Origin: Macrostomum lignano
Lineage: Eukaryota
Length of the DNA: 48,295 bases
Assembly: GCA_002269645.1 (NCBI GenBank)
Contig: NIVC01000262.1
Coordinates: 378,887-427,181, forward strand
Reading direction: 5' to 3'
Below, piece by piece: positions 8,973 through 35,620 of this stretch. Numbering within the stretch: position 1 is the stretch's first letter; each line of letters starts with the position of its first letter. The translations under genes and the position numbers were made by a program. The notes under the pieces were generated by a model, which searched no databases, was not told the DNA's origin, and was given only the letters and a program-made list of their open reading frames with translations.

Positions 8973-9032
<60 letters not shown>

Positions 9033-9137: not shown

Positions 9138-9176
<39 letters not shown>

Positions 9177-11642: not shown

Positions 11643-11714
11643 GTTCAGATTACATCTAGGGACACGAACTCCGCCAAACTTGTAAAATTCAAACCCACCC
11701 CACCGAGTCAAACA

Positions 11715-14104: not shown

Positions 14105-14139
14105 CTGCAGAGGGAGTGGCCCAGCAACTGACACTGCTC

Positions 14140-14612: not shown

Positions 14613-14616
14613 TCAC

Positions 14617-15241
14617 CTAAACCGGATGAAGTTCCTAGCTAAAGCCAGCAGAACTTTAGTATCGTCCAGTCCAACGCCGCAGGCGACTCGGCCTACAGGG
14701 CCACAAAAGTCTTCGCCAATGGTGCGCATCAGCTGATTGTGATCCTGCCTGGTGTACGATGCCGGATAATTAGTAGTTTGCGGAGTGACCGCCTGCAGAC
14801 CGTCAAGACCCAGGCAGCTCTTCAAATAGAAGCACAGCGGGCTGAACTTGGCGTGCTCCCGCTCGGGACTGTCCCCCTGATCCAGTCCCGCAGTCCCAAG
14901 TCGCAGAAGAAGCACTTGACGTGATCAGCGTCGCCTAGGCTATAAAAACCGCACTCTGCCATGTCCTCGGCTGTTTGACCTCCGCCACTAACACCGCTAC
15001 GATTGTCCCAGCCTACGCGAACAAATGAAGCCATCCGAGCTTCCTTAGAGACATAACTTAAAGAGCAGGCGCTCGAAATCAAGTAGACAACTGCGTTTAA
15101 TGCTTCGTAGAAATCTGGCACCGTATTACTATTGGCTAATCGATTAATTCTGGCGCCAAGTTTGTTTGAAATGGCAGTGGAAGCTTTTACTAGCGTTTGC
15201 CGATGCTCCACTGTCAGCTGAGGGGCAGCTGGAGCAGCCAT
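14617..15241 (-). CDS. Single-BIR inhibitor-of-apoptosis-like protein, main exon, with a 1-nt frameshift near 14882
   Basis: YVSKEARMASF..AECGFYSLGDADHVKCFFCDLGLRDW[fs]QGDSPEREHAKFSPLCFYL is a complete CCHC BIR; donor TTAG|GTGATT at 14617. Confidence 0.85.
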
Positions 15242-15347
15242 AACGAGGCTGGGCTGAGCCCCACTTTACAGCTTGGAAACTCGTTTTACCATCGGGAATG
15301 CCTTCTGCAAGTGTTTGGTAAGTAGATGTGTATTCCAGTTATCTCTG

Positions 15348-15680
15348 ATGGCTGGCCCAGCAACTGAGGATCTGAGAGGTTGGCCCAGGAACTGGGGATC
15401 TGGGAGGCTGGCTCAGCAACTGAGGATATGGGAGGCTGGTGGCCCAGCAACTGAGGATCTGGGAGGCTGGTGGCCCAGCAACTGAGGATCTGAGAGACTG
15501 GCCCAGCAACTGAGGATCTGAGAAGCTGGCCTAGCAACTGAGGATCTGAGAGGCTGGCCTAGCAACTGAGGATCTGAGAAGCTGGCCCAGCAACTGAGGA
15601 TCTGAGAGGCTGGCCTAGCAACTGAGGATCTGAGAAGCTGGCCTAGCAACTGAGGATCTGAGAGGCTAGTCGACCAGCAA
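15348..15680 (-). repeat. 28-bp minisatellite, diverged variant of the same family
   Basis: (CAGCAACTGAGGATCTGAGAGGCTGGCC)n on the + strand. Confidence 0.93.
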
Positions 15681-17033
15681 CATTTTTGTAACTTATACAC
15701 AGTTATTTATTAAATTCTGCAGATACCCAACACTTTTGCAGTGTATGTGTACAATTTGCAGCCATATTTTACACCAGCTAATAAAATTTGAATCCTTGCT
15801 TCAGAACTGGAATTTAGCAATTTATTAACGGCTATTGTAATCTGAAACTTTGAATAGGTCATAATGGCTATATTGAGACAAATCCAATATACTAAATCTT
15901 CTCTAAACTTGATCTTTCAAGTTGTAGTAACTCTTAGCTAATTAATAGTAATAGCCAATTCATTTAATATTTACTTAAAAGGTAAGGACAGTTACTTTCC
16001 TAAATTACATTATTTTGCTTTGCTAATATTATCAGAAATCCCATTTATTAAATGAGACTTGACAATGTTATATATAAAAATAATTTTTCAAGAATATTAA
16101 CTAAAAAACTATGTTTATATATCAATTAAAGCACTTTATTTTACATTGTTAAAACCTTTATTATAGCATTCTGCTACTTCTTGTTTATAATATTTTGCTA
16201 ATTAACTTAAATTTTAAATGCAATAATTATGAAAAATATTATATAACATTTTTATTTTAGAAATAATTAATAAGTCTATATGTTTAACTCTTAGTCAATA
16301 TATTTTTTGTTTTCTACTAAGAAATGTTAAAGCACTTTTTAATAGATAGTTCTTTAAAATTTAAAAGGACTAAAAGGACTAATAATGAAAGTACTAGAAA
16401 TTATTTTCCTTGGAACCAAAAGTTATTTAACTAGAAGTTACTTTTTCATAGTAACACTTGAACAGTGGCTTTGATAGCAATAAGCTTTTGCTTAGTAAAG
16501 GTTGTATAGCAAGATGTACTTATAAAGAAAGTATGAAAAATACAAATAGACTAGATTTACTTGGTGACTATATTCAGGAATGTGTATATTATGGCAAAAA
16601 AATTTTAATGTATAAAAAATTGTATATAAATTGGTACTTATGGCATATAGCAAAAGCTTAGAAAAAATTTCAATGCACAGTGGTATCTAGCAAAAACTAA
16701 TTAGAAAAGTTTAGCTTACAAATGGGTTGTCCAAAATGTACCTATATGTATACAAAGATAGGATAGATATCAAGAATATTCAAAATTGAATTTAATCAAC
16801 CAAAAATTTGGTTAAAACTTGAACTAAAAAGTTGACAATCCAAATACTGAATAGTTGCTTTGATGTAGGATTATGATTTTGAATGTTGGATCAAATCTTG
16901 AATATGGGTATTGTGATGCATATATAAAAGGAAAAAATTAGAAATAAATAGGAATTATAAAATTAAGGACTAAGTTGTTTGCAATTAAAGTTGGTAGTCT
17001 AGAGTATTAGGGGTTGTAGGCAAATAACTCAAA

Positions 17034-17552
17034 TAGGGATAGCAAAATCCTAGTTTTTTGCAATCTTGGGATCTTGGGATTTAATCCCAAAATTTAGCCA
17101 ATCCCAGGATCAGAAAAATACAGATTTTAAAGCTTCTGGGTTGAAATTTTAAGGCAAAAATGTGCTAAAAATATTTTTGATTCCATTTTAGTTTGTTACA
17201 GAGATACTGATTTTTTGTAGATGAAAAACAGTATTATCTTATGATGTACTTAAGTAGTATAAAAGTACTAATTAGTAGTAAAGAAGCTAATCATGTATCA
17301 AAATTTATATAGGAATAAATTTCACATTTAAATCTGTAATACATGGTTTAAAAAGACGCCACATAACGTGAGGAAATTTAATAGAAATTAGTGCAGTATA
17401 TTAAACTAGGCCTAGTTATGGGCCCAATTATGTTCATATTACAACACTTTATGTAAAAATAATAACAAAATTAGTCCTAGGATTTGGAACCCCAAATCCC
17501 AGGACTGGAAATCCCAGGATTTGGGTCCAATACCGGGATTGCAATCCCTACT
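17034..17552. mobile_element. Degenerate non-autonomous TIR element (possibly hAT-like)
   Basis: TAGGGATAGCAA at the left and TTGCAATCCCTA at the right, with subterminal ATCCCAGGAT/GGGATT motifs at both ends; no clean TSD. Confidence 0.35.
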
Positions 17553-18851
17553 CATAAATAAGGGAAGGAATTAAAGATAGGACAATATAGTATATCTTAA
17601 CAAAAGACAATGAGGGTGCTTAAGTAATCATATTATAAGCTTAGATTGAGTACTAAGGATTTAGGATTCTTTAAGGCTTTAGAAGTAGAGCATTAAAAAT
17701 AAGTTTAAGAACATAGATATAGAGACACTAATTCTAATTCCTATAAACCAAGAAGGGTAAGATTGGCATTTGGTATTTTATACATTTTTAATAGAGATAA
17801 GCTTATTGGTAAACATACATATACAACCTTGGGAATCACTTGGCTGTTTCTATTGGCAACACATACATGTAAGTCGCTATTGGCTGAGAGCAGTCATGTG
17901 ACTACTATTCTATCCAATAGTGACTTACATGTGTGTGTCAGTGTGTGTTGCACATAGAAATGGCCGGGTGAATCCCTAGGTTGCACCCAAGCCTGTTGGT
18001 AAAGGGTTGCTAAAGGGAATAGGCTAGATATTAAATACCATATGTTTTAGCAACGAGTATAACTATATCTAATTGCTATGCATTAAGAATTTCATAGGCC
18101 CCTATAGGGCCTAAGTTTCTTCATTGCAAATCAGACACTCAAAACAAAGAGTACCAATTAGTTGCTCTTAATTGAATAGAACTTAGAAGCCCTAATAACT
18201 TCTAACATAGGCCCTAATTCAATTTGAATATTATATTTTTCTAAGTAGTATTAGAAAGATCTTGGTGATTTATTTTTATTATTTTCTATCATAGCATATT
18301 ACAACATTTTCATTTCAAACAAGTAGATAAATAAAGTAACAAAATTCTAAAAATGAAAAATTTTCAAATAAAAAACTAATTTAAAAAATAATTTCTAAGA
18401 GTGATAATAAGCTAGTTAGGTATATTTTATAGGCCTTAACTTCCCTAACAAAATTGTATATGCAGGCATTCTTGCTAGCTATTCATGCGGTGCACAATTA
18501 TATCGAGGCCACATGGCTATCTAATGTAGTCTAGAGTACTAACAACAGCTATTTGCATTCATGCAAGATGCAACATGACTAGATTAGCAACACTGCCAAA
18601 TCCTGGCACATGGAGTTAAGAAAATAGGAAAACAATATGTTAGCAATATCAATTCTTTTCCTATTGTTAAACATGCTAATAGCATAGACAACTCAACTGT
18701 TTGACTTGACGTAGTTGTGGCATATGGTACTGCATTTCTGCTAGTACAATGACACACTATCCTCAGTCAGCTAGTACGGGTGATGGTCATTTCGTCAACT
18801 GGCGTTTCGTCAACTCGGTTGACGAAGTGACCAAAGTGTTGGGGCGACTTT

Positions 18852-20220
18852 ACGTATGAAACATTCGCCGACACTTATTCAGACACTTCTACAGACACTT
18901 TATTTTCTGTCGTACGGTTAGGAACAAGCATTAAATTTGTCTAGGACACTTCCTAATTCATATTTAATGAAATAAAGCAGTCCATGCATAGTTTTAATTT
19001 TGCAATTTTGTTTTTGTGCACTCGTTCCAGACTTTCAAATTATGGCTTTTATCGCGTAGTGTGCGTGCATGCATCGTGTACAACGATTAGCTGCAGCGTG
19101 CTAAATAGTTCAATTAGGTATTAAAAGCGTACAAGGTATTTGTACAATAGTATTTGTACATTTTAGTTGAAGTTAAAAGTTCAAGCTTTTAGTGAATCAT
19201 TGGAAAATAAAACTATCCGTTTTAAATCGTGCAACATATTGTTTTGTCTCGGACATTTGTGACACTGTCACTTAGGGTTGCAAGGTTTTTTAAAAGAGAA
19301 ACTGTTGCTTTTCCAATGCTGAAGTATTTGTGTTGTATGGATCAGGGTTTTTCGTCAAAATTTGGATGCATGTATACATCTAAACATATAAAAATGATCA
19401 AGGTTGAAGATTACCCTATGGTATAACTGTTTTCTCCATTTTACTATTTCAAAGTGCCCACGTGAAGTTAGATTTAGCATGCCAGCCTTAAAAAATAAAA
19501 AAATCTACATAGTGTAGAATTGTATACTCTTTTATTTAAGACTATATTATATTCCCAATATATTTGCTTAGATAAATCGAAAAGTATTTACTTTACTTGA
19601 AAAAAATAATGTTCACTACAAATATTTCAATGTAGAAACCAGGAAACATAAACCTATCAAGTGTTATATAGAAATGAAGGATAAAGATATGGATAGAATA
19701 TAATAAAGCCATTGTGGGCATTAAATATAAAACAAAAGAATCACTTAAGGCAAAATTTGAAAAAAGTGAATTTTTGGCATGCTCCAAGAAAAGAGGCTTA
19801 TAATTTGAAATATTTTTGCTTTTGTTTGACAAAAAATATGTATAGATTTATACTTTTGGGCAAGGTTTATTTTCTCTTAAAATTCTAATTGTAAATTTGC
19901 CAGTAAGCTTAAAAATTGTTGTAAATTGAAGCTCAAATAAAATTAGTCTTAACTCCAATCTGACTTTCCAAAGTAAATCCCTAAATTATTTGTTACAATT
20001 GCTTTAAAAACTTGCCATTTCATTTATTCATTAATCAAAATTTTGTTCTAGAAACTGATACCTATAGAAGGTTTTTAGTTTTTAAGAAATCTAGTAACTA
20101 GTGTCAGAGAAATATGTTTATGTAGGTTTTATATATATATATCAACCTTATATATAAAAAAGGTTGCACACTGAGATTTAAATACAGCTTCTAACATGTG
20201 TGTCCAGAGGTGAGATTGTG
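18852..20220 (+). repeat. Left TIR, unique outer domain (inverse of 30683-32052)
   Basis: Near-perfect reverse complement; the ORF track mirrors it (e.g. MQHIVLSRT.. on opposite strands); only about 2 substitutions noticed. Confidence 0.97.
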
Positions 20221-23030
20221 GCCAACTGCACACCAATAGCATACCAACTCTATACCAAATCCATACTGACATGCCAACTGTATACCAACTGTATACAAAC
20301 ACCATATCAACTCCATACCAACTGCATACCAACCCCATACCAATATGCCAACTGCATACCAACTCCATACCAATATGCCAACTGCATACCAACTCCATAC
20401 CAACATGCCAACTGCATACCAACTACATACCAACATGCCAACTGCATACCAACACCATACCAACTCCATACCAACTGCATACCAACTGCATACCAACTCC
20501 ATACCAACTACATACCAACATGCCAACTGCATACCAACACCATACCAACTCCATACCAACTGCATACCAACTCCATACCAACTATACTCCAACATGCCAA
20601 CTGTATACCTACACCATACCAACTGTATGCCAACTGCATACCAACTCCATACCAACATGCCAACTGCATACCAACTCCATACCAACATGCCAACTGCATA
20701 CCAACTACATACCAACATGCCAACTGCATACCAACACCATACCAACTCCATACCAACTGCATACCAACTGCATACCAACTCCATACCAACTACATACCAA
20801 CATGCCAACTGCATACCAACACCATACCAACTCCATACCAACTGCATACCAACTCCATACCAACTATACTCCAACATGCCAACTGTATACCTACACCATA
20901 CCAACTGTATGCCAACTGCATACCAACTCCATACCAACATGCCAACTGCATACCAACTCCATACCAACTGCATACCAACTCCATACCAACATGCCAACTG
21001 CATACCAACTCCATACCAACTGCATACCAACTACATACCAACATGCCAACTGCATACCAACACCATACCAACTCCATACCAACTACATACCAACATGCCA
21101 ACTGCATACCAACACCATACCAACTGCATACCAACTCCATACCAACATGCCAACTGCATACCAACTACATACCAACATGCCAACTGCATACCAACACCAT
21201 ACCAACTCCATACCAACTGCATACCAACTGCATACCAACTCCATACCAACTACATACCAACATGCCAACTGCATACCAACACCATACCAACTCCATACCA
21301 ACTGCATACCAACTCCATACCAACTATACTCCAACATGCCAACTGTATACCTACACCATACCAACTGTATGCCAACTGCATACCAACTCCATACCAACAT
21401 GCCAACTGCATACCAACTCCATACCAACATGCCAACTGCATACCAACTCCATACCAACATGCCAACTGCATACCAACTACATACCAACTGCATACCAACT
21501 ACATACCAACATGCCAACTGCATACCAACACCATACCAACTCCATACCAACTACATACCAACATGCCAACTGCATACCAACACCATACCAACTGCATACC
21601 AACTCCATACCAACATGCCAACTGCATACCAACTACATACCAACATGCCAACTGCATACCAACACCATACCAACTCCATACCAACTGCATACCAACTCCA
21701 TACCAACTATACTCCAACATGCCAACTGTATACCTACACCATACCAACTGTATGCCAACTGCATACCAACTCCATACCAACATGCCAACTGCATACCAAC
21801 TCCATACCAACTGCATACCAACTCCATACCAACATGCCAACTGCATACCAACTCCATACCAACTGCATACCAACTACATACCAACATGCCAACTGCATAC
21901 CAACACCATACCAACTCCATACCAACTACATACCAACATGCCAACTGCATACCAACACCATACCAACTGCATACCAACTCCATACCAACATGCCAACTGC
22001 ATACCAACTACATACCAACATGCCAACTGCATACCAACACCATACCAACTGCATACCAACTCCATACCAACTACATACCAACATGCCAACTGCATACCAA
22101 CACCATACCAACTCCATACCAACTGCATACCAACTCCATACCAACTATACTCCAACATGCCAACTGTATACCTACACCATACCAACTGTATGCCAACTGC
22201 ATACCAACTCCATACCAACATGCCAACTGCATACCAACTCCATACCAACATGCCAACTGCATACCAACTCCATACCAACATGCCAACTGCATACCAACTA
22301 CATACCAACTGCATACCAACTACATACCAACATGCCAACTGCATACCAACACCATACCAACTCCATACCAACTACATACCAACATGCCAACTGCATACCA
22401 ACACCATACCAACTGCATACCAACTCCATACCAACATGCCAACTGCATACCAACTACATACCAACATGCCAACTGCATACCAACACCATACCAACTCCAT
22501 ACCAACTGCATACCAACTCCATACCAACTACATACCAACATGCCAACTGCATACCAACACCATACCAACTCCATACCAACTGCATACCAACTCCATACCA
22601 ACTATACTCCAACATGCCAACTGTATACCTACACCATACCAACTGTATGCCAACTGCATACCAACTCCATACCAACATGCCAACTGCATACCAACTACAT
22701 ACCAACATGCCAACTGCATACCAACACCATACCAACTCCATACCAACTGCATACCAACTGCATACCAACTCCATACCAACTACATACCAACATGCCAACT
22801 GCATACCAACACCATACCAACTCCATACCAACTGCATACCAACTGCATACCAACTCCATACCAACTATATTCCAACATGCCAACTGTATACCTACACCAT
22901 ACCAACTGTATGCCAACTGCATACCAACTCCATACCAACATGCCAACTGCATACCAACTCCATACCAACTCCATACCAACATGCCAACTGCATACCAACT
23001 CCATACCAACATACTAACTACATACCAACA
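20221..23030 (+). repeat. Left TIR inner minisatellite array of 11-bp (CCAACTGCATA/CCAACTCCATA) and 8-bp (CCAACATG) units
   Basis: Direct reading, about 2.8 kb. Confidence 0.97.
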
Positions 23031-23107
23031 TGACAACTTATATTATGCCACACTAAACGAAAACATGGCAAATTCATACCATTGTTTCATGTTTCAGGCT
23101 TCTTTGC

Positions 23108-25945
23108 ATGGCAGCGAAGAAAAGTGTGAACGACACTTCTGAAGCCATTAGCGGTGACCATTCAGGTGCTGCTGGTGCACAAGTTTTTTCTGCTGGAGGT
23201 TTTTTTGTGGAATCATGCATATCAACTAATCTCTTCGTGAATCACTTTGATACAAGAACTTGTAAACTTAAGCCTTCTTGGTTGGATCAAGTCATTTATC
23301 CACTGTTAAGACAGCATGGTGAGTATTGTCAGTTCTCAGTTAATAAGGTTAGACTGCGTGCATTTAAGCGCCATAGGAAGGACTGCAGTTTTCTTTGGAT
23401 GCGCCTAGTCTGTGCCGAAGGCTCTGGTTGCAGTATGGCATTCGTCGTCACCTTAAACAAGGCGCCGACTGATGGGCAGTCCTCTACACTGACGCTACGA
23501 AGAATCTCAGAGCACTCGGGGCATGATGTTCCATCAAGTTGTTCCTCTTATCGCTATCTGTGGCAACGAGGTTCACAAGAGTGCCGTAACTTTGTTTTAT
23601 CTCAGGCCACCAACCCTGCTGCCAAGCCAACGCAGATCTATGTGAAAGCAATCGAGCTGTTTGGTAGCGAAGAATGCTCTCTATCTGCTGTCCGTACAAC
23701 TGTTAGTCGGACAAAAGCTGCCGACGACAAGTCTCCAGACGACATAAGAGATTTAAGACTCCAAATGAAAGACTGGAAGTTGACTATAAACGAGGATGGA
23801 GTCATTAGCGGCTATATCCAAAAGATTGACGTTGCACCAGTTAGTGTGATTCTCCATACCTCCATGCAGTTGGATTTGCTTCGCGACGTGCTGAAAGGCA
23901 ATCAGCTTGCTCCTCTCCACTTAGACGCCACCGGCGGAATTGTGCGACAGACCCAGAACGTGCCGAGCACTGTACTTCTGTGCAGTGCTGTTGTTGCAAC
24001 CCCGGATATAAAGAGAACAGCTGTATCAGAAAGCATCATGGAGGTCACGCGCTCGGAAAATGTGTCCAGTTGGCTAATGCATTTTTTAGCAGATTTCGCT
24101 CGTCACTGCAACATAGGACTGTGGGAACTACCCAAGAAAGGTCCGCAAATCTACGTGTCTGACTTTAGCTGGGTTTTCATTCATGGTATTCTCCGAGCCG
24201 CATGCACGACCTGTGTTACAGACTACCTGCGTGTACAGTACAATCGACTTCGGAGTGCTGATCTGAAGCCACCTGAATCTCCTGTTGTGTTTATCTGTAG
24301 CTCGCATTTGCTGCGCGCTGTTGCCAGGACTTTGAAGTCACCAGATAAAATCGATAAGGTTACTTATCGCGAGTTCATGCTCTCTTTTGCACTATTAGTG
24401 ACGTCGAAAACTTTGCGTTGCGCCCAAGCTGTTTGGAAGGCAATGGTCGAGGTGTTTACCTCCAGGCGGGTAAATCCTGCCACTTTGAAGGCTTTACAAA
24501 TTCTACATGGTAGGTTCGACTTCAGTTCGTTGGAGATTCCTGATGAAAACCAAGTGGCTGAAGATTCTGCTAATGTCTCAAATGCAGTGCAAGAAGACGT
24601 CGCATTGGCTGAATTGGAGACTGGACTACGAGCCTCATCACCTTTTGCGAAGTACTTCAACGATTTGACAAGCGAAGTGACAGCAAGCGATGGCAATGGC
24701 GTGCTGAACAATCTTTTCTACCCTCAGGCTGTTCAGGTTGTATTGCGAAAGTGGATGCCACTGTTTCCTCTTTGGAGTGTGGCAGTGTTTGGAGGAAATC
24801 GTAGCGCACACGTGACCAACGCCGCTGTTGAATCATGGTTCAGCTGGTGCAAAAGCGAAGCACTGCCTTCTCCAAGTTCTCGGCTCAGGTTACCAAGATT
24901 TGTCCGTGCGCAACTAACAACCGTAAAACTGCAACTGAAGCGGTTGCAGCACGAGCAACATCCAATTCGCCCCCCAAAGCGTGCTAGAGGACGCAAATGT
25001 GGCTTTGATGCTCCGTTAAACCCACCTGGAGATCCCTGGAAAAGGTCAGGAGCCTCAAAAAGACGAAGAACCAGCTTCATTCAATCGGCATTATCAATTC
25101 CGCCAGCCGTTGCACCCACGACCTGTACTCTAGCTGCGCCTGCTGCAAGTGGGTCTCGCTTGGGCAGCCAGCCCGTCATTGTCCAGGTTCGGCCTGCTAT
25201 TGCACCCACGACCTGTACTCTAGCTGCGCCTGCTGCAAGTGGGTCTCGCTCGGGCAGCCAGCCCGTCATTGTCCAGGTTCGGCCTGCTATTGCACCCACG
25301 ACCTGTACTCTAGCTGCGCCTGCTGCAAGTGGGTCTCGCTGGGGCAGCCAGCCCGTCATTGTCCAGGTTCGGCCTGCTATTGCACCCACGACCTGTACTC
25401 TAGCTGCGCCTGCTGCAAGTGGGTCTCGCTTGGGCAGCCAGCCCGTCATTGTCCAGGTTCGGCCTGCTATTGCACCCACGACCTGTACTCTAGCTGCGCC
25501 TGCTGCAAGTGGGTCTCGCTCGGGCAGCCAGCCCGTCATTGTCCAGGTTCGGCCTGCTATTGCACCCACGACCTGTACTCTAGCTGCGCCTGCTGCAAGT
25601 GGGTCTCGCTGGGGCAGCCAGCCCGTCATTGTCCAGGTTCGGCCTGCTATTGCACCCACGACCTGTACTCTAGCTGCGCCTGCTGCAAGTGGGTCTCGCT
25701 GGGGCAGCCAGCCCGTCATTGTCCAGGTTCGGCCTGCTATTGCACCCACGACCTGTACACTAGCTGCGCCTGCTGCAAGTGGGTCTCGCTGGGGCAGCCA
25801 GCCCGTCATTGTCCAGGTTCGGCCTGCTATTGCACCCACGACCTGTACACTAGCTGCGCCTGCTGCAAGTGGGTCTCGCTCGGGCATTTCACCTGCACCA
25901 ACAGCACAGAATACCACCTGTCACAGCCTACCAGATGAGCAAATT
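23108..25945 (+). CDS. MULE/Mutator DDE transposase, exon 1 of a predicted transposase-USP fusion
   Basis: N-terminal C..C..H.H WRKY/GCM-like region; LHLDATG (D1), VSDFSW (D2), CSSH (CxxH), TNAAVESWF (E); GTGAGT donor at 25946; the ORF itself reads on to 26074. Confidence 0.88.
25102..25880 (+). repeat. Coding 90-bp tandem repeat (30 aa, PAIAPTTCTLAAPAASGSRWGSQPVIVQVR) x ~8.6
   Basis: TGCACCCACG recurs every 90 nt from 25111 to 25831. Confidence 0.97.
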
Positions 25946-26142
25946 GTGAGTGATGAAATTGCATTTTTTCAGTTTAGAAATACCTTCAGTCAACCCTTGT
26001 ATTGGTTTACGTATTGTGTATGCGCCGTACACTCACTCCGCCACAATTTGCGTCTCCCACTAGATCTGTCGTAGTAATGTATGTGCCATGTCTCAGCAAC
26101 TTGTGGGTAAGGTGCAACCTTATCAATCAACTCTCTTTGTAG

Positions 26143-26167
26143 GCCTCCTCCGTCTCGACTGGCACAG
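26143..26167 (+). CDS. 25-nt micro-exon linking transposase to USP domain
   Basis: CTCTCTTTGTAG acceptor and CAG|GTATTT donor; converts phase 0 to the phase 1 needed by the next exon. Confidence 0.55.
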
Positions 26168-26481
26168 GTATTTATATTGCACAATCCAACATGTTCCGTA
26201 TGATGCACGTCTCTGTTACGTGATTGTTCTCTGATTAGAGATCTAAAGTTTATGATTCTATCATTTTTTTGCTTTTCGTGTCACCGATTATGCCCTTTTA
26301 AGTTTTACTAATTTCCATGAATTAGCATTCAACATGTTGCTTTCCATAAGTATTTGTACTTTTAAGTTTCGTTTCTTTTGCTTACGTCGAGGCGCCATTT
26401 TTTGTTGTTAAATGGATGTGACTGGGCTGTTCACTGGGACATTTTGATGGTAAATTCGTTCCTAACCGCCAATTTTATTAG

Positions 26482-26813
26482 GACGCGCCGACACTGCAGT
26501 GTCATTTCCTGCACTATCGCCACGGTCGCCAGAGGGGCTACCGAATCCGACGGGCACGTATTGTGCTTTCAATGCCGCCAGTCAATGCTTGGTTGCAACA
26601 TTAACGAGCGCACTATCGTGTGATGCAGATTCACCACTTGCATTGTTCCTTAACTGCCTAATGACAGGCAAAGACGTTCTGTTGCTGCATTCAGCCGCGT
26701 TTCAGTGGTGCAGTAAAGCATTTCATATGGATCCTATGGCACAAAACTGTGCCTTAGAGTTTCTGACCGGAATGCTGTTTCTTTCTGAGCTCAAACTGCG
26801 ATTCAGCTGCGAG
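26482..26813 (+). CDS. USP (peptidase C19) N-terminal exon with Cys box
   Basis: GLPNPTGTYCAFNAASQCL (Cys box) and AQNCALEFL (QQDAxEFL-like); GAG|GTAAGG donor. Confidence 0.8.
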
Positions 26814-27034
26814 GTAAGGGTGAACGGTTTATTAAGTTTATGACTATTTAAATGCGTTTTAGTAAAGTGATTTAAGCCTGCATCCTGAATCTAAATTTAT
26901 TTGTAAGTTACCTTCGAAGACAGTATATACTTTGCTGGAAGGCAAAGAATACCTTTCAATCGCGCTTCCACTGTGTGTTGGTCTTCACAGTTGCACCATG
27001 AGTACTGTTCCTATCCATCTTTTTTATTTCGTAG

Positions 27035-27562
27035 ATTTCTACAACTTTGAGTTGTTCCGCCTGTTTCAAAGTGACACGACTGCTACCTAGAGACACGGCA
27101 ACTATTCTACGTTTATCAATTCCTGATCACGACGACTCGCTTGATTTCCCGGCACTCATTAGACAGTCACTGTTTTCTACTCAAGACCACACCGACATCC
27201 GTTGTCCGACTTGCGACGTCGGGGGGTGCAGCTATGCACAAACACTTGCAACAACGTCGGAGCACATATGCATGGGAATTAGCCGAGTCTCTGTCAAGCG
27301 CAGAAAGGGACAAACTGTACTATTCGAGAAGAACACTAAAGTTGTACCCATCGAGATGAAGCTTACTTTGAGTGGCAGAAGCTACAAGCTTCGTGCAGCC
27401 ATCGTTCACATTGGTAGTCGCGTGAATAGTGGTCACTATATTGCATACGTATTCTGTGGCCGCACTAGCTACTGTGTCAGTGATTTGACTGTACGAAAAG
27501 TATCTTTGTCAGCGGCATTCAATGACGTGAAGCGAAACTGCTGCGCTCTTTTTTACGGCTAA
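27035..27562 (+). CDS. USP (peptidase C19) C-terminal exon with zinc-finger cysteines and His box
   Basis: ISTTLSCSAC..CPTC..YKLRAAIVHIGSRVNSGHYIAYV..VSDLTV..ALFYG*; TTTCGTAG acceptor, phase 0. Confidence 0.88.
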   Translation: MSTTLSCSACFKVTRLLPRDTATILRLSIPDHDDSLDFPALIRQSLFSTQDHTDIRCPTCDVGGCSYAQTLATTSEHICMGISRVSVKRRKGQTVLFEKNTKVVPIEMKLTLSGRSYKLRAAIVHIGSRVNSGHYIAYVFCGRTSYCVSDLTVRKVSLSAAFNDVKRNCCALFYG

Positions 27563-28404
27563 CGTGCTGGTGATCTCCGTGTTATTAACATAATGTGGAC
27601 GGTTTACTTATTTTCTTGAGTTTATTCGTGTTTGTAATGGTCTCATGCCGTTGAAAGTATAAATTCATAACTGATGATCGTGCTGTGTAATGTATTTATA
27701 ACAAAAACTTTTAACTGTGTTGAAAAGGTCTACATATATACATGTACGGATTTGCATTTTATAGTTTACCGCCATTTTAATTCTCTATTTTTCTGTATGC
27801 GCTAAAAGCTGGGACTAAACGCCGTTAGTAAACCGTTTAGACAACGTGAGTTCTAAAACTTATAGTGTCAACTATATACTCTTTTCTTGCAGCTAAATAC
27901 TCTCCATTTGAGTATAATCGTAATTGTTTTTGGCCTGTGAAACCTGTACACCTGTCACTTATCACTTAGGCCAATAAATGTCACAAAAGAAAAAATTGTT
28001 CAACGAAATACGTGCCATGAAACATTCCTTTGCTTTATTTATCCGAAAGAATTTATTTCAACACAAGGACTGACAACTAATACGGGTAAAGGAAATGAAA
28101 CTGTTCAAATATAAGTATAAACTACAATTAATCGTTCAAGGAAGTATAGATTAAAAACCACATAAGATACTTGTCTCATAGTTACTACTACGCTGAAGTC
28201 ATTCAACTACATACTTTGTTGCAATGAAAATTGTTGCATGGTACAATAGATAAGCCAATAAGCTATACGAACGGTATGACTTTGTTTAATGCTCGAATAC
28301 CAGCGTTCTTATTTTCGTGCAAAAGAAGCTGGCAAACTCGCATAACGAACTCGCAAACTGAACAGACACGCATCCGATATTCCGTCACGCATCATCCTAG
28401 TCTG

Positions 28405-29544
28405 TTACTCATGCCTCGTTCGCGAGCGCAATGACATCGCTGGTTGGACCGACCTTAAAGATCTCTGGGGCCTCTGCGATCTCCGACGCATTGGTTTTAG
28501 TGGTCCAAGAGCGGGACACTCGTACTGTTGGGACTGCCGCTGTTCATCCAGCTCGAGCTGCCGCGGCTCCTCCTGCAATGCGAGTTGCCGTTGGCCGTCC
28601 TGTATCTGCGGATGCCGCTGTTCATCCAGCTCGAGCTGCCGCGGCTCCTCCTGCAGTGCGAGTTGCCGTTGGCCGTCCTGTATCTGCGGATGCCGCTGTT
28701 CATCCAGCTCGAGCTGCCGCGGCTCCTCCTGCAGTGCGAGTTGCCGTTGGCCGTCCTGTATCTGCGGATGCCGCTGTTCATCCAGCTCGAGCTGCCGCGG
28801 CTCCTCCTGCAGTGCGAGTTGCCGTTGGCCGTCCTGTATCTGCGGATGCCGCTGTTCATCCAGCTCGAGCTGCCGCGGCTCCTGCAGTGCGAGTTGCCGT
28901 TGGCCGTCCTGTATCTGCGGATGCCGCTGTTCATCCAGCTCGAGATGCCGCTGCTCGTCTTGCAGCGCGTGCTGCCGCTGCTCCTCATCAGTTGGGCGTG
29001 ATCGCCGCTGCATGAAACGCCGACGGTGCACAGTCGATTGTAGCTGACTGAAGCCGCGCGAGACAACGAGCAGAGAACGAAGAACAGACACATCACATGA
29101 AGAAATAAGGAGCCGAAAGCTCTGCAAAACTTGCTTCCGCAGTCGCTTTGAACTTTGAAAATGGTGACCCGGAACCTCTCGACGTAGGACAACTGACTGC
29201 GTCAGATGTGGCTTAGTTACACGCTGCAGCCAAGCAATGCCATTACCACGGTGGTCTTTGTTTCCACAACCATATACACCGTGCAAAAATGCAACCTTGC
29301 TAGGATCGGTTATTAATTGGACAACAGACACTCGATCACGTCCGCACCTACGAAATCCGTCTCGCACACGGATATTAGAATGATTAAATGAACGTGTGCA
29401 AACGCAAAGCCTCTGGCAAACCGACTGAATCGATAGTTCATCGCTGTTGTTGAACGTCACAATGACAGGAAGAGAAGGGCATGGTAGGACCGCACCTACA
29501 CAAGGCAGAACAGCATCCGGTGGGCCTTGTAATAACTGGTCCAT
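28405..29544 (-). CDS. Second, convergent transposon ORF (379 aa, unknown function) with Gln/Glu/Arg-rich 26-aa repeats
   Basis: Long ORF extending about 550 nt beyond the repeat; converges on the transposase gene; true start and splicing not established. Confidence 0.55.
   Translation of the reverse strand: MDQLLQGPPDAVLPCVGAVLPCPSLPVIVTFNNSDELSIQSVCQRLCVCTRSFNHSNIRVRDGFRRCGRDRVSVVQLITDPSKVAFLHGVYGCGNKDHRGNGIAWLQRVTKPHLTQSVVLRREVPGHHFQSSKRLRKQVLQSFRLLISSCDVSVLRSLLVVSRGFSQLQSTVHRRRFMQRRSRPTDEEQRQHALQDEQRHLELDEQRHPQIQDGQRQLALQEPRQLELDEQRHPQIQDGQRQLALQEEPRQLELDEQRHPQIQDGQRQLALQEEPRQLELDEQRHPQIQDGQRQLALQEEPRQLELDEQRHPQIQDGQRQLALQEEPRQLELDEQRQSQQYECPALGPLKPMRRRSQRPQRSLRSVQPAMSLRSRTRHE
28537..28990 (-). 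repeat. 78-bp tandem repeat (26 aa, EEPRQLELDEQRHPQIQDGQRQLALQ) x ~6
   Basis: Direct reading; one unit is 75 bp, so frame is preserved. Confidence 0.96.
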
Positions 29545-29670
29545 GAATATGGAAGAGTGCGATTTTAGTCATCAAAAGAGTCAGGAAAGATGGCAACATG
29601 GCAGAAGTATCCCAAGAGTTGTACAAAAAGAGAACCTAAAAGTTCCTACGAGTCTCGCAATTTAACATTC

Positions 29671-30682
29671 TTGGTATGGAGTTGGCATGCAGTTGGCATG
29701 TTGGTATGGAGTTGGTATGCAGTTGGTATGCAGTTGGTATGCAGTTGGCATACAGTTGGTATGGAGTTGGTATGCAGTTGGTATGCAGTTGGTATGCAGT
29801 TGGTATGCAGTTGGCATACAGTTGGTATGGTGTTGGTATACAGTTGGCATGTTGGAATATAGTTGGTATGGAGTTGGTATGCAGTTGGTATGCAGTTGGT
29901 ATGCAGTTGGTATGGAGTTGGTATGCAGTTGGCATGTTGGTATGGAGTTGGTATGCAGTTGGTATGCAGTTGGTATGGTGTTGGTATGCAGTTGGCATGT
30001 TGGTATGGAGTTGGTATGGAGTTGGTATGCAGTTGGTATGGAGTTGGTATGCAGTTGGCATGTTGGTATGGAGTTGGTATGCAGTTGGCATGCAGTTGGT
30101 ATGGTGTTGGTATGCAGTTGGCATGTTGGTATGTAGTTGGTATGCAGTTGGTATGGAGTTGGTATGGTGTTGGTATGCAGTTGGCATGTTGGTATGTAGT
30201 TGGTATGCAGTTGGCATGTTGGTATGGAGTTGGTATGCAGTTGGCATGTTGGTATGGAGTTGGTATGCAGTTGGCATACAGTTGGTATGGTGTAGGTATA
30301 CAGTTGGCATGTTGGAGTATAGTTGGTATGGAGTTGGTATGCAGTTGGTATGGAGTTGGTATGGTGTTGGTATGCAGTTGGCATGTTGGTATGTAGTTGG
30401 TATGGAGTTGGTATGCAGTTGGTATGCAGTTGGTATGGAGTTGGTATGGTGTTGGTATGCAGTTGGCATGTTGGTATGTAGTTGGTATGCAGTTGGCATG
30501 TTGGTATGGAGTTGGTATGCAGTTGGCATATTGGTATGGAGTTGGTATGCAGTTGGCATATTGGTATGGGGTTGGTATGCAGTTGGTATGGAGTTGATAT
30601 GGTGTTTGTATACAGTTGGTATACAGTTGGCATGTCAGTATGGATTTGGTATAGAGTTGGTATGCTATTGGTGTGCAGTTGG
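29671..30682 (-). repeat. Right TIR inner minisatellite array (about 1 kb)
   Basis: Reverse complement of the 20221-23030 units. Confidence 0.97.
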
Positions 30683-32052
30683 CCACAATCTCACCTCTGG
30701 ACACACATGTTAGAAGCTGTATTTAAATCTCAGTGTGCAACCTTTTTTATATATAAGGTTGATATATATATATAAAACCTACATAAACATATTTCTCTGA
30801 CACTAGTTACTAGATTTCTTAAAAACTAAAAACCTTCTATAGGTATCAGTTTCTAGAACAAAATTTTGATTAATGAATAAATGAAATGGCAAGTTTTTAA
30901 AGCAATTGTAACAAATAATTTAGGGATTTACTTTGGAAAGTCAGATTGGAGTTAAGACTAATTTTATTTGAGCTTCAACTTACAACAATTTTTAAGCTTA
31001 CTGGCAAATTTACAATTAGAATTTTAAGAGAAAATAAACCTTGCCCAAAAGTATAAATCTATACATATTTTTTGTCAAACAAAAGCAAAAATATTTCAAA
31101 TTATAAGCCTCTTTTCTTGGAGCATGCCAAAAGTTCACTTTTTTCAAATTTTGCCTTAAGTGATTCTTTTGTTTTATATTTAATGCCCACAATGGCTTTA
31201 TTATATTCTATCCATATCTTTATCCTTCATTTCTATATAACACTTGATAGGTTTATGTTTCCTGGTTTCTACATTGAAATATTTGTAGTGAACATTATTT
31301 TTTTCAAGTAAAGTAAATACTTTTCGATTTATCTAAGCAAATATATTGGGAATATAATATAGTCTTAAATAAAAGAGTATACAATTCTACACTATGTAGA
31401 TTTTTTTATTTTTTAAGGCTGGCATGCTAAATCTAACTTCACGTGGGCACTTTGAAATAGTAAAATGGAGAAAACAGTTATACCATAGGGTAATCTTCAA
31501 CCTTGATCATTTTTATATGTTTAGATGTATACATGCATCCAAATTTTGACGAAAAACCCTGATCCATACAACACAAATACTTCAGCATTGGAAAAGCAAC
31601 AGTTTCTCTTTTAAAAAACCTTGCAACCCTAAGTGACAGTGTCACAAATGTCCGAGACAAAACAATATGTTGCACGATTTAAAACGGATAGTTTTATTTT
31701 CCAATGATTCACTAAAAGCTTGAACTTTTAACTTCAACTAAAATGTACAAATACTATTGTACAAATACCTTGTACGCTTTTAATACCTAATTGAACTATT
31801 TAGCACGCTGCAGCTAATCGTTGTACACGATGCATGCACGCACACTACGCGATAAAAGCCATAATTTGAAAGTCTGGAACGAGTGCACAAAAACAAAATT
31901 GCAAAATTAAAACTATGCATGGACTGCTTTATTTCATTAAATATGAATTAGGAAGTGTCCTAGACAAATTTAATGCTTGTTCCTAACCGTACGACAGAAA
32001 ATAAAGTGTCTGTAGAAGTGTCTGAATAAGTGTCGGCGAATGTTTCATACGT
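30683..32052 (-). repeat. Right TIR, unique outer domain
   Basis: Reverse complement of 18852-20220. Confidence 0.97.
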
Positions 32053-32499
32053 GCGACTTTTGTGGCAGTGGGGTTGTGTGGTAGGGCGAGCTACCACTCC
32101 GAGCAAGAACGTTTCGTGAGACGGCGACGGGTGACATCACCGCTATGACTCGTTGTATTTTGTCACCCGGTGCGCCGTCCCATGCCCCATCCTTTGCCGA
32201 TGCTCTAAGTTTTGTTTTTTCTCCGTTCCCGGCTTTGTTGTCGTCCGTTGCCCCATCTTTTGCCCCATTCTCTGCCCCATCCCTTGCCTTGTTGCCCCAT
32301 CCCTGTCCGGGCGACACTTCCTCTATTTATATGGCCAATTCGGGCCGCCTGTTTTTATGTTTTTTTTGTTTTTCCTTCCTCCCTTCCTCCTCCCCCTTCC
32401 CCTTCTCCTTCCTGCTGTTAACTTCTTACGTTTTCTGGTTTTGTTCTTAGTTTCTTTTGTTGGTTTAACGTAGCATAACTTAGTTTGGTGTTTTAAGTT

Positions 32500-34060
32500 T
32501 TCTTTGGTTAGTGAATTTGGCACCCGGCACCGGCCGCGATCACCGTCGGTTTTCTTCAAATAATAACTTTTCTAATTTAACCAGTAACCCAGCCGGCTCA
32601 ATAAATAAACCTAGTAATAATTAAAATAAGTTGTTCAATCATCGAAGCCCATAACAGTTTATCTTGAGTTATTTGCCCGTGGGGCGTTAAACAACCCGAT
32701 TTATCTTGACTCTAAGCGAGCTCTGAGATCTCAACGTTCCGTAATACGAAACTACGGTGGTGGCAGCGCTACTCTACTGACAGTAATCAGTACGACAATT
32801 GAAAACATATTTTCGGTGTCTAGACCATAGAGTCTAAAGTTCTGAACGACCGTGCCGCTTACGACCGCTCGACTACGATTACGACTACCCTCCCCCCGGA
32901 TTTGAGAACCCGGCAGTCGGAGTAAAACAGGAGGAAACAATTCGTTGTGATTCGTCTGCGCGATTTCCGGCTTTATTCGTGCGAACTCAACGCTGTTCGG
33001 TTTCGAAGAAACCCAACTTTTCAAACCCACCAACTATCAAGAAAATTTTCTTTCTTCCTCCGCCCCACCTCAGTTGCCACCATTTAATATTTTTCATTTT
33101 AAATGCGCGCCCGTGTTTTTCTTCGTGAATACCAACCCGTGCGGCCAACCATTGTTATGACATCACCCCCTCCTCTTGTTGGCCCCGTGTGTGGACCCAC
33201 CGTTGCTTTTCAGTTTCCCATCGTTGGCTAACAGCCTTTTCATTAGTTGGAATTAAGCGGTTCATTATATATTTTCTGTGTAATTTCTCCTTTAACCATT
33301 GTATGGCCCCCTTGTTGGCTAATCTTTCCCCCATGCTTTGGACGTTGCCCTACTTTTGCTTATATAAACTACTCATGCTCAGTTGCCAATTTTTCTAACT
33401 TTCTTCTTGCGCGATCGCTCCCTCACTATCTTGTCTGTTTATCTCTACAGTTCATTAATTTATTAGTTTATTAGCGCACCGGCGCCCGTGTATTCATCAT
33501 CGTCATTATATTACTCATTAATCCATAAATAACCTGCTTTAAAATTAATAACCATAATTACTTTAATAAATAACAACAAATTAACGCTTAATATTTATTC
33601 CGTTGACTTAAGCCATAGCCTATCTTGAATCCTTTGCCCGTGGGGCGTAAAATAACCGAAATCTCATCTCAAATAAAGCTCTGAGATCACTAAACGTTCC
33701 GTAATATGTAAATTACGGTGGTGGCAGCAACTACCCTACTGACAGTAATCAGCTCTGCAAATCGACACATTACTTTACGGCGTCAATCTCCGGTGTCTAC
33801 CATCTGAACGACCGTGCCGCTCTAACGACCGCTCTGCTACGATTACGACTACCCTCCCCCCGGAATTTGAGGACCCCGGCTGTCGGAGTAAAAGGAGAAG
33901 AAATTCGTGGTGATTCGTCTGCGCGATTTTCCGGCTTTATTCGTGTTTCAACAACGCCGGCGGCAATTCATACGAGGAATCCGCCCCACCTCACTGGTGT
34001 CAGCAACTAATTTAAAATAACCCACCAATTTCCAAGAAAACTTCTCCACCCCCACCTCAC
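32500..34060 (+). repeat. Diverged direct duplication (about 32500-33072 versus 33460-34060) of an unidentified element, possibly LTR-like
   Basis: Shared blocks such as TTGCCCGTGGGGCGT, ACGTTCCGTAATA, TACGGTGGTGGCAGC, CTACGATTACGACTACCCTCCCCCCGGA, GATTCGTCTGCGCGATTT, CCCCACCTCA. Confidence 0.8.
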
Positions 34061-34858
34061 TTTACTTGTAGTTAACGAAGTGACCAATGCCTAGGTCCTT
34101 CCCATTTGCTTTTTGACGAAATGACTAAAATTTTCATTATATGAATGATAACGTATGTAGCTGATACAGCTTCATATCTTGTATAGCTTACAATTATTGT
34201 TATATCGATAACTTGTTTTATTAATTGCCTTATTTTTAAAAACGAACAAATTTTGCAATACGCCTGGACTGCATGTCCATTAGGTTAAATGTTTCGATGC
34301 AAATATTCTATGCAAATGCGTCACCCCAAGCGCACTCATACCCATATACGTCCGGGCATTAATGAATATTGAGTATTTGTGTGTTATGCGACCATACACG
34401 CGACTACAAAACATGGGTATTTCTTCTATCAAAACGCGTCGAGGACTGCTATAAAGTCCCCTATATATGGAGTCGTGAAAATTGGTGGACTGCGTGCGCC
34501 TAATTCCCACCCCTCCACCCCGCTGTGCACAGTCAACCGAAGCCCCCGCAGCGAATCTTGATATCCGGTAATGCTCTTGATCGGAGTATATAATTACGCA
34601 CGATTCACGCGCGCTCATCGATCGATCATGCCGTATAAGGTATTTCACTCCCTGTCATGCTAACACTAAAATTTACAATGCACTGTAAGAAGGCACAAGA
34701 AGCAGACACGAGCAGAGATACGCAAAGGCACAGGCAGACGCGCAAACCGATCGGCGATATTGGGTGCAGTACCACAGCGGCGTGCTCTTGATTCGTGCAT
34801 TCCTGCTCATGTAGCTGCACAAGACTTGGCCATGTGCCTAAGCCTAGTGCTTTTACGT

Positions 34859-34905
34859 GTAGGGTCAGCAAACTTTTTACCTCAAGGGCCAGATTGAGAA
34901 CCTAG
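34859..34905 (+). mobile_element. hAT-Charlie-like terminal fragment
   Basis: AGGGTCAGCAAACTTTTT..AAGGGCCAGAT resembles Charlie-group termini. Confidence 0.4.
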
Positions 34906-35429
34906 CGCAATTACTGCCCTTCTGGGTCCGCTTCGCTGGGCCCCTAAGCAAAATGCACCCAGGAGTCCCTGATGATTGCAAGCCAAAGGAGGGAGAGAGG
35001 ATAGGGAATAGAGAGAAGAGAAATACGAGCTGGCGTACTCTCGTAGAAGAAAGGAAAGGCGAAGGAATAAGGATAAGAGAGTTTACGATCGAGAGGAGAG
35101 ATGAAATAGGAGAGGATCGATCGAGAGGAGAGGAGAGACGAAATAGAGAAGAGAGGAGAGGAGAGGATTGAGAGAGGAGGGAAGGGAGAAGAGATGGCTA
35201 CTCCAACACAGAATTGAAAATTGGCCTGGTTATGTCATAATGCCACAAACTAACAACAGGAGTTTGGGTGCCCTTAGATTAGAAGAAATTATGTGCAATG
35301 TGCCCTCCCATCATTAGCCCCCCCACTCTGAAATTTTCCGACATTACTGGCTTGAGCTACAGTACATTTACATGGTAGTCTGGGGAGTCCTGCAGTCCGA
35401 GGCCAGCTTAATGTACAGCTGACCGCTAG

Positions 35430-35620
35430 AGGGCAGCGTTGTTCCAGGCGAGGCGGTGATCGAGACCGTCCTGCTGTATACTGTCAAGACCTGGACGCTG
35501 ATGAAGTCGCTCGAGCAACAAGTTGACGCGGCGCACGCTGGCCTGCTGCGCGCCGCCTTCAAGATCGCCTACGCGAGTGACCAACACGGCTTTTGTATCA
35601 CCGCGCCGACCTGTTCCGTC
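35430..35620 (+). mobile_element. Degenerate non-LTR retrotransposon (RTE-like) RT C-terminal fragment
   Basis: LFQA.VIETVLLYTVKTWTLMKSLEQQVDAAHAGLLRAAFKI matches the ESVLLYGxETWTLxKxLExxLD pattern. Confidence 0.7.

Follow-up and report, generated by a model that had tools for sequence, protein, structure and literature searches.

A 13.2-kb element occupies positions 18852-32052 of the stretch of Macrostomum lignano DNA that we analysed, a segment of 48,295 nucleotides from contig NIVC01000262.1 of assembly GCA_002269645.1, referred to below as the window. We are confident that this element is a low-copy, very young, cut-and-paste DNA transposon of the Rehavkus/NOF group, within the Mutator superfamily of Mutator-like elements (MULEs), and that it is of Foldback type and, judging from its sequence, apparently autonomous. 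It is bounded by long inverted arms and encodes, on the forward strand, a transposase (open reading frame 1, ORF1) and then two exons of a USP/UCH-type protease, followed by a third frame (ORF3) on the reverse strand, which converges on ORF1. The positions of these features, and of the repeats discussed below, are collected in Table 1.

Structure and genomic copies of the element

The two arms form the one dominant inverted repeat that a repeat finder detects in the window, and they are separated by 9345 nt. Base-by-base comparison of their near-exact parts gives three mismatches, at offsets 919, 1073 and 1918 from the ends, two of which fall in the outer, unique 1370 nt and one in the minisatellite part. 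In the left arm these outer 1370 nt are AT-rich and non-coding. Further inward the arms consist of an 11-bp minisatellite (2.8 kb on the left and 1.0 kb on the right in the window copy), within which their register is lost past offset 1928; a gapped alignment nevertheless pairs 2439 with 2382 nt at 96.1% identity. An inverted repeat of such length and identity cannot arise by chance. At the outer junctions, the left flank ends in GGGGCGACTTT and is followed by ACGTATG, and the right end reads CATACGT followed by GCGACTTTTGTGG, which leaves an exact 8-bp direct duplication on the two sides. An initial annotation of this DNA had described an exact 8-bp target-site duplication (TSD), unique terminal inverted repeats of about 1.37 kb with about 2 differences, arms that continue as minisatellites so that at least about 2.4 kb can pair, two convergent genes, and an element that is apparently complete. 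The counts given here agree with that description, to which the two USP exons between ORF1 and ORF3 are to be added, and both ends, the duplication GCGACTTT and all three coding regions are intact in the window copy.

The terminal motif is followed by three CMGACACTT motifs at 12-bp spacing, which are mirrored at the right end (32004-32036). Taking the window as a whole, the CAGACACTT motif shows no enrichment (15 matches, compared to 11.6 expected), and what distinguishes it is only its clustering at 12-bp spacing at both ends. By analogy with Muta1 of Aedes aegypti, the terminal motif and the 12-bp repeats are putative cleavage and transposase-binding sites.

ORF1 is identical to "hypothetical protein BOX15_Mlig004567g1" of M. 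lignano, whose protein cluster contains five sequences from six loci of GCA_002269645.1, one of these loci (L004) being the window. Other copies in the assembly, which the initial annotation had proposed to look for, were thereby obtained: five beyond the window copy, with six contigs in all. In a BLAST comparison of two copies, the similarity to the window ends exactly at 18852 and 32052, and all six copies have the terminal motif at both ends and flanks of their own. The TSDs are GTACACTGT (9 bp) in L001, TTATTAAT (8 bp) in L002, CTTCAGAA (8 bp) in L003, GCGACTTT (8 bp) in L004, TTATTTTC (8 bp) in L005, and GTAAAACAA (9 bp) in L006, which has a Cpn10 gene as its neighbour. Because there are six independent insertions, each with its own TSD, an assembly inversion is excluded and the element is mobile DNA. 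Long-read assemblies can indeed give spurious inverted duplications, and the arms are almost identical, as would be expected if a palindromic or inverted long-read misjoin had made them. We consider the probability of such an artefact negligible, given that the two-armed structure, with a unique centre of 6-6.6 kb, occurs at six loci on six contigs with separate flanks and TSDs, that the lengths of the arm arrays differ between copies, and that an independent protein set contains a portion of the element too (P0161, see below).

Within the unique 1370 nt, the arms of any given copy show 0-3 differences. Among the ten arms of L001-L005, pairwise differences range from 0 to 6 in 1370 nt (at most 0.44%), and L006 differs from the other copies at 19-22 positions (about 1.5%), with 2 differences between its own arms. 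This shows that the element transposed recently, and the initial estimate of a very young element stands, with 0-3 differences between arms and no more than 6 per 1370 nt among five copies. We also observe that the divergence between L006 and the window copy is uneven, with 1.4% in the unique arm part but only 0.2-0.9% in the coding and spacer segments of the centre. Copies may have exchanged sequence by recombination or conversion, or the segments may be under differing constraint.

The six copies are 10.4-13.5 kb long, and this spread comes almost wholly from the tandem arrays: the left 11-bp array measures 0.68-2.88 kb, the right one 0.97-1.67 kb, the 90-bp coding repeat 240-780 bp, and the 78-bp coding repeat 367-445 bp. 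Two copies, that of the window and L001, have ORF1, the two USP exons and ORF3 all open. USP exon B is frameshifted in L002 and L003, ORF1 carries a frameshift near residue 622 in L005, and L006 shows several degraded places.

A second M. lignano family, found at L009:3453-21902 (contig NIVC01001607.1) and also at L008, encodes a transposase (P0007/P0156) that is 38% identical to ORF1. The L009 copy has inverted repeats of only 67 nt, which lie 18.3 kb apart and start with TACGTGTATAACATTTACCGAC, a terminus resembling that of the element described here. Four 12-bp subterminal repeats (CCGAYCRATATT) occupy the same position as those of the element, a 3.8-kb array of a 20-bp minisatellite adjoins one end only, a 30-bp in-frame repeat follows the transposase, and a mariner-type gene is nested inside. 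In L009 we found no matching TSD and no counterpart of the USP exons or of ORF3. Comparison of the two families leads us to infer that the long arms may have arisen as an inverted copy of a whole end region, array included, in an L009-like element with one minisatellite.

The ORF1 transposase and its assignment to Rehavkus/NOF

Based on its residue pattern and on its predicted structure, ORF1 is composed of a WRKY-like zinc finger followed by a DDE domain with an RNase H fold. In sequence searches, ORF1 alone gave no meaningful Pfam match and no PDB sequence match, a PDB sequence search with the profile of its family returned only noise, and a word-indexed protein search, with ORF1 alone or with an alignment, returned only the element itself and one metagenomic relative. 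An exhaustive HMMER search with ORF1 retrieved 641 relatives of 20-40% identity, the named sources of which include the second M. lignano family, the stick insect Bacillus rossius, the clam Mercenaria mercenaria, and a Sedimenticola metagenome-assembled genome record. The homologue P0040 (1067 aa, with a PHD finger) is assigned in its record to a metagenome-assembled genome of "Sedimenticola sp.", where its contig measures 7.6 kb, and is probably animal DNA misbinned into a bacterial genome.

In the alignment of ORF1 with 39 homologues, the residues that are invariant or nearly so are D273 (in HLDATGG), T275, G276, D352 (in DFSW), C397 and H400 (CxxH), and N571 and E575 (NxxxE). The layout read from this alignment, D-D-CxxH-E, is that of the hAT/MULE/P transposase group. 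An AlphaFold model computed with the 40-sequence alignment reached a mean predicted local distance difference test (pLDDT) score of 81.8, compared to 36 for a useless single-sequence model. In a Foldseek search of the PDB with the former, the first match is the IS256-family transposase ISCth4 (6xgx and 6xg8; E 1.7e-4, probability 1.0). The four-stranded N-terminal module resembles WRKY DNA-binding domains (WRKY18; probability 0.96, E 0.11), and its zinc ligand pattern is C102-x5-C108-x27-H136-x2-H139, of which the first three residues are invariant in all 13-14 homologues that include the N-terminus. Fingers of the WRKY/GCM1 type are typical of the N-termini of MULE transposases. IS256 is the bacterial relative of the eukaryotic MULEs (PMC5225508). 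The intact DDE frame of the initial annotation is borne out by the invariant residues of the family and by the IS256-family fold match, not by the Pfam and PDB sequence searches.

The supplement of Dupeyron et al. 2019 (PMC6446971) provided the references for the assignment, namely the complete NOF protein of Drosophila and the DDE domains of six Rehavkus elements from Repbase. A hidden Markov model (HMM) of the family, built from the 40-sequence alignment, matches all six Rehavkus references (E-values at Z=1e6): Rehavkus-1_TC at 2.8e-74, Rehavkus-3_TC at 1.7e-73, Rehavkus-1_HR at 2.6e-57, Rehavkus-1_DY at 1.3e-40, Rehavkus1_AP at 1.8e-27, and Rehavkus-2_NVi at 6e-26. ORF1 by itself matches Rehavkus-3_TC (7e-13), Rehavkus-1_TC (1e-11) and Rehavkus-1_HR (6e-7). 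The HMM also matches NOF, the protein of FB-NOF, with an E-value of 9.4e-49 over profile positions 21-493 of 509, and in the DDE region NOF and Rehavkus-1_DY are almost identical. The initial proposal of a Foldback-type element like FB-NOF is therefore upheld by the match of the family profile to NOF (E 9e-49) and to every Rehavkus reference. The Foldback trait itself is present, with arms that are made largely of short tandem repeats, vary in length between arms and between copies, and are able to pair. Mutator-type traits are present as well, namely the IS256/MULE-like fold, the N-terminal WRKY-type finger, and a TSD within 8-10 bp. Rehavkus has been described as related to, or part of, the MULE superfamily (PMC6446971; PMC13359780). 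According to PMC6446971, its members make 9-bp TSDs, have inverted repeats that measure 26-412 bp and a minisatellite close to the end, and encode a PHD finger; the Rehavkus elements of Tribolium have been called "foldback DNA transposons" with long inverted termini and variable numbers of tandem repeats (bioRxiv 10.1101/2024.12.02.626372).

Part of this evidence could also fit a foldback element of the hAT or P/Galileo type. These superfamilies make TSDs of 7-8 bp, and a CxxH after the second Asp is common to hAT, P and MULE transposases; ORF1 has such a CxxH, and four of the six copies have 8-bp TSDs. We nevertheless judge this origin very improbable. No hAT dimerisation, THAP or P-element transposase domain is detected by Pfam in ORF1 and 94 homologues, and the Hermes and P-element structures, both in the PDB, are absent from the top 50 fold matches, which are headed by ISCth4. 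Of the traits that define hAT, only the 8-bp TSD fits. Two copies have 9-bp TSDs, and the family profile matches Rehavkus and NOF with E-values down to 1e-74.

Protease exons, ORF3 and the surrounding DNA

Exons A and B, as read from their translation, encode a bona fide USP/UCH (peptidase C19) deubiquitinase domain. The Cys box GLPNPTGTYCAFNAASQCL of exon A aligns residue for residue with the USP consensus, and the domain as a whole has its Cys box (GTYCAFNAASQCL), its His box (SGHYIAY), and the catalytic Cys, His and Asp in place. Exon B alone matches the Pfam family UCH (PF00443) with 33 bits and exons A and B together with 38 bits (cutoff 23.9; profile positions 69-254). A second candidate donor lies at 25950, 4 nt downstream of the first within GTGAGTGATG (25946-25955), and with the same acceptor it would keep ORF1 and the USP in frame; a transposase-USP fusion through donor 25950 is hypothetical.

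Protease tails recur in the family. Among 54 long homologues, Pfam detects Ulp1 in 8, OTU in 2 and UCH in 1, and by motif a canonical USP Cys box follows just after the transposase in 9 of 149 homologues. A NOF-type tail, "WGG...NTCxxDN", is found by motif in 16 of the 149. In its longer form, "WGG...NTCxxDN...CSxxxCP", this tail is seen in NOF, P0037, P0040, P0041, P0046, P0051, P0053, P0054 and P0058, and also in P0060, P0069, P0075, P0084, P0110, P0119, P0120 and P0142. NOF and P0142 end in GH[YF]I[AS]Y...W...[ND]D, which is like the USP His box, and this pattern is present wherever the tail is complete. The NOF tail has no Pfam match, and a PDB search with a profile of the NOF-type tail returned only USP18, at a non-significant E-value of 0.15; Cys box, CxxC pair and His box follow one another correctly in this match. 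These features are suggestive of a peptidase of USP type that has diverged strongly.

A transposase with a C-terminal cysteine protease and an 8-bp TSD would also be expected of an element of the Zisupton/KDZ superfamily, and a C-terminal Ulp1 domain was reportedly described for Zisupton by Bohne et al. in 2012. The presence of Ulp1 in some members of the ORF1 family is in line with this origin, as is the 8-bp TSD of Zisupton (PMC12730594). Yet the Pfam KDZ model, through which this superfamily was compared, has no match in ORF1 or 94 members, and the family matches named Rehavkus and NOF references, so that we regard a Zisupton/KDZ element as improbable compared to one of the Rehavkus/NOF group.

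Comparison of the M. lignano USP with the USP tails of homologues (P0035) gave no match, and no close host USP paralogue was found in a database search of limited reach, which gave only another copy of the element. Because of these two negative results, ancestral retention and independent capture of the USP are both possible. A 197-aa M. lignano protein from another annotation, P0161 (UniRef A0A1I8HZW9), is 98% identical to the USP exon region; it bears the name "SPARK domain-containing protein" and looks like a mis-annotated transposon fragment. It is conceivable, although we would bet against it, that a C-terminal deubiquitinase-type protease is ancestral in Rehavkus/NOF (a USP here, a USP-like domain in NOF, and Ulp1 or OTU elsewhere), that the choice of splice donor attaches or omits the USP, and that Foldback transposition depends on, or is regulated by, the removal of ubiquitin-like modifiers. 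If the protease were indeed ancestral, the intact M. lignano copy would be a tractable system for studying the movement of Foldback elements.

ORF3 is a predicted gene that starts 127 nt inside the boundary of the right minisatellite. The public annotation lists a gene here, and five of the six copies have the frame intact. We found for it no Pfam or PDB match, no counterpart in the second M. lignano family, and no detectable relationship to mudrB or any other protein.

Table 1 Features of the element and of its borders, in window coordinates.
Feature	Position	Strand	Remarks
TSD, left copy, GCGACTTT	18844-18851	.	identical to 32053-32060
Terminal motif ACGTATGAAACATTCGCCGAC and three CMGACACTT motifs	18852-18903	+	motifs at 18868, 18880, 18892; 12-bp spacing
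Left arm, near-exact part of terminal inverted repeat	18852-20779	+	1928 nt; repeat finder
Left subterminal 11-bp minisatellite CCAACTSCATA	20222-23038	+	about 270 units; inward continuation of arm; Tandem Repeats Finder
ORF1, Rehavkus/NOF-type transposase	23108-26074	+	988 aa, open
WRKY-like zinc finger of ORF1 (C102, C108, H136, H139)	23411-23524	+	
DDE core of ORF1	23924-23926, 24161-24163, 24830-24832	+	D273, D352, E575, respectively; plus C397-x2-H400
In-frame 90-bp (30-aa) tandem repeat in C-terminal tail of ORF1	25110-25886	+	8.6 units; Tandem Repeats Finder
Putative intron	25946-26481	+	donor GTGAGT at 25946, acceptor at 26481
USP/UCH exon A	26482-26843	+	Cys box GLPNPTGTYCAFNAASQCL; catalytic Cys codon 26562-26564; QNCALEFL
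USP/UCH exon B	27047-27562	+	two zinc-ribbon CxxC pairs; His box SGHYIAY (His 27434-27436); Asp 27482-27484 (VSD); stop codon
ORF3	28405-29544	-	379 aa, open; predicted gene; converges on ORF1
78-bp (26-aa, Q/E-rich) tandem repeat in C-terminal half of ORF3	28535-28977	-	Tandem Repeats Finder
Right subterminal 11-bp minisatellite, reverse complement of left unit	29671-30682	-	about 96 units; Tandem Repeats Finder
Right arm, near-exact part of terminal inverted repeat	30125-32052	-	1928 nt; repeat finder
TSD, right copy, GCGACTTT	32053-32060	.	identical to 18844-18851

The flanks of the element (1-18851 and 32053-48295) are packed with minisatellites, including a 21-bp unit repeated 30 times (2743-3368), a 23-bp unit repeated 55 times (7131-8376), AGAC repeated 100 times (8956-9353), and a 27-bp unit repeated 50 times (10280-11642), which creates a spurious frame of 456 aa. 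Further arrays have units of 45/89 bp (12833-13291), 31/62 bp (36780-37509), and 66 bp, the latter repeated 10 times (44927-45588). Strong swings in GC content (23-62%) coincide with these arrays. One 28-bp minisatellite occurs three times (3967-4402, 14141-14609 and 15350-15667): the last two arrays share the same orientation and flank an open reading frame with a BIR domain (14822-15241, reverse strand), and the first, which is inverted and lies 10 kb upstream, adjoins an exon for the BRCA2 OB1 domain (from 3494). A pol fragment of a long terminal repeat retrotransposon, with RNase H (of the reverse transcriptase-associated type) and integrase zinc-binding domains, is found at 41455-42729 on the reverse strand.

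Weight of the evidence, proposed mechanism and known systems

Several observations weigh against the assignment of the element to Rehavkus/NOF or against its being active. ORF1 and NOF do not match significantly in a pairwise comparison, the link being at the profile level only. ORF1 is without a Pfam-detectable PHD finger, a listed Rehavkus trait. The TSD is 8 bp in four of the six copies, including that of the window, and 9 bp in the other two, compared to the 9 bp given for the Rehavkus references. Neither ORF1 nor any of 94 homologues gave a canonical MULE or IS256 (Transposase_mut) Pfam match. In the public gene model, donor 25946 is joined to acceptor 26481, which leads into another frame of the USP exon, and the protein ends 40 aa later. 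The frameshifts seen in four copies may be real decay or may be indel errors of long reads. An empty site was not found by exact look-ups of the two flanking single-exon genes (the BIR frame and a frame of 284 aa), which returned only the contig of the window, and no non-autonomous derivatives were seen among the loci examined. In a selection test on the USP and ORF3, comparing L006 to the window copy, substitutions were too few and the divergence too low.

A PHD finger is found in 5 of the 54 long homologues, and Drosophila NOF is without a Pfam PHD; since NOF is nearly identical to Rehavkus-1_DY in its DDE domain, the finger is not universal in the group, and its absence from ORF1 is therefore not excluding. 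As for the canonical MULE and IS256 families, the only related Pfam match among the homologues is one faint match to an RNaseH-like domain of ZSWIM1-3 (E 0.06), and it is therefore fold similarity and the literature that place the element in the superfamily.

The points that concern activity raise the question of whether the element is structurally complete and recently dead, having moved in trans only or not at all, with the USP exons and ORF3 being captured host fragments as in a Pack-MULE. There are only six copies, and in four of them one or more coding regions are broken by frameshifts or stops. The second M. lignano family is without USP and ORF3, no similarity was detected between the USP and the USP tails of further members, and a paper cited in PMC4079207 has a title that calls FB-NOF non-autonomous. 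On the other hand, neither the window copy nor L001 has an interruption in any of the coding regions, the USP retains its catalytic Cys, His and Asp, protease tails recur in the family and are not a one-off capture, and no close host USP paralogue turned up within the limited reach of the search. We therefore see a dead element as a serious possibility, albeit a distinctly less probable one than not, and continue with an element that apparently encodes its own mobility.

For such an element we propose the following mechanism. The WRKY-like zinc finger would bind the 12-bp-spaced CMGACACTT repeats by the ACGTATG termini, and the DDE domain would excise the element and insert it at a staggered cut of 8-9 bp, by cut-and-paste as in Muta1. 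Slippage or unequal exchange would lengthen or shorten the 11-bp arrays of the arms, which may supply additional binding sites and allow the element to fold back on itself. Transcription would run inward from both arms, giving a transposase unit and an accessory unit with ORF3, and the transposase may be joined to a C-terminal USP through the choice of two donors 4 nt apart. As has been proposed for the Ulp1 and OTU proteases that other transposons carry (PMC2836005), the USP would have an accessory, ubiquitin-related role, with ubiquitin-dependent repair in the host or the turnover of the transposase as its target.

This kind of transposon is already known, and what is new is a complete young family in a new phylum, a unique arm part longer than in the tabulated Rehavkus and arthropod MULE elements, and a USP domain and an extra convergent frame in an element of Rehavkus/NOF type. 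In the literature searched, we found no published description of a USP/UCH protease with such an element. From the profile matches and tail motifs, one animal transposase family that Pfam does not model links the Repbase Rehavkus elements, Drosophila NOF, and many "uncharacterized proteins" with USP, Ulp1 or OTU tails. The Rehavkus group is extended to Platyhelminthes and, by the origin of the homologues, also to a mollusc and a stick insect, and the "hypothetical proteins" BOX15_Mlig004567 and BOX15_Mlig024943 are transposase genes. Foldback elements have been known since 1980 for rearrangements and for seeding satellite DNA. Autonomous copies with an intact transposase are rarely at hand, Tetris having none and FB-NOF being called non-autonomous, whereas here a laboratory flatworm has near-identical copies with both ends intact, at least two of which have transposase, USP and accessory frame all open. 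Transgenesis is established in M. lignano, and the element is a candidate for direct tests of Foldback/Rehavkus transposition and possibly a new insertional tool. Its kilobase-long inverted arms are also likely trouble spots for assembly and sites of ectopic recombination.

Among known systems with long inverted repeats, Galileo of Drosophila buzzatii is similar in its kilobase-long inverted repeats, which contain tandem repeats with further binding sites for the transposase, according to work cited in PMC4079207. It differs in belonging to the P superfamily, with a THAP-domain P-type transposase, a domain that ORF1 lacks, and a 7-bp TSD. Maize MuDR belongs to the same superfamily as the element. 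It has two convergent genes (mudrA and mudrB), transcribed inward from long inverted repeats, and ORF1 and ORF3 resemble these in geometry only. The inverted repeats of MuDR are about 0.2 kb and without a minisatellite, and ORF1 is not matched by Pfam MULE. The comparison with MuDR made in the initial annotation pointed to the right superfamily, but between ORF3 and mudrB no relationship is detectable.

Muta1 is an experimentally active MULE, described as a "type 2 Foldback", with 8- or 9-bp TSDs and 12-bp subterminal repeats (PMC5225508). The element shares with it the 8- and 9-bp TSDs, the 12-bp repeats by the terminal motif, and the presence of a handful of near-identical copies. Muta1 is, however, only 3.2 kb long, with inverted repeats of 145 bp and a single canonical MULE transposase of 504 aa, and has neither a protease nor a second gene.

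Like the element, FB-NOF has arms made largely of short tandem repeats with copy-variable length, NOF matches the family profile over nearly its full length, and the C-terminus of NOF has motifs like a His box (GHYIAY) and a Cys box (NTCxxD), in parallel to the USP of the element. FB makes 9-bp TSDs. The arms described here differ from those of FB-NOF in their unique outer part of 1.37 kb, and the pairwise match of ORF1 and NOF is not significant. With Rehavkus, the element has in common a homologous DDE domain, long inverted repeats with subterminal tandem repeats, and a large size (4.9-18.5 kb in Rehavkus, PMC6446971). It differs in its host, Rehavkus being listed for Arthropoda and Annelida only in PMC6446971, in its near-exact arms of 1.9 kb, compared to 26-412 bp in the table of that paper, and in its mostly 8-bp TSDs, the lack of a Pfam PHD, the USP exons, and the convergent third frame.

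Proteases of this general kind have been described in other transposons, reportedly including Zisupton. MuDR-type elements carry Ulp1, Ginger1 carries OTU or Ulp1, Helitrons carry OTU, and in Trichomonas a peptidase C19 accompanies an IS5-like transposase (PMC2836005). The element resembles all of these in encoding a cysteine protease of ubiquitin or SUMO type alongside the transposase or as part of it, and differs from them in that its protease is a USP/UCH (C19) in an element of Rehavkus/NOF type.

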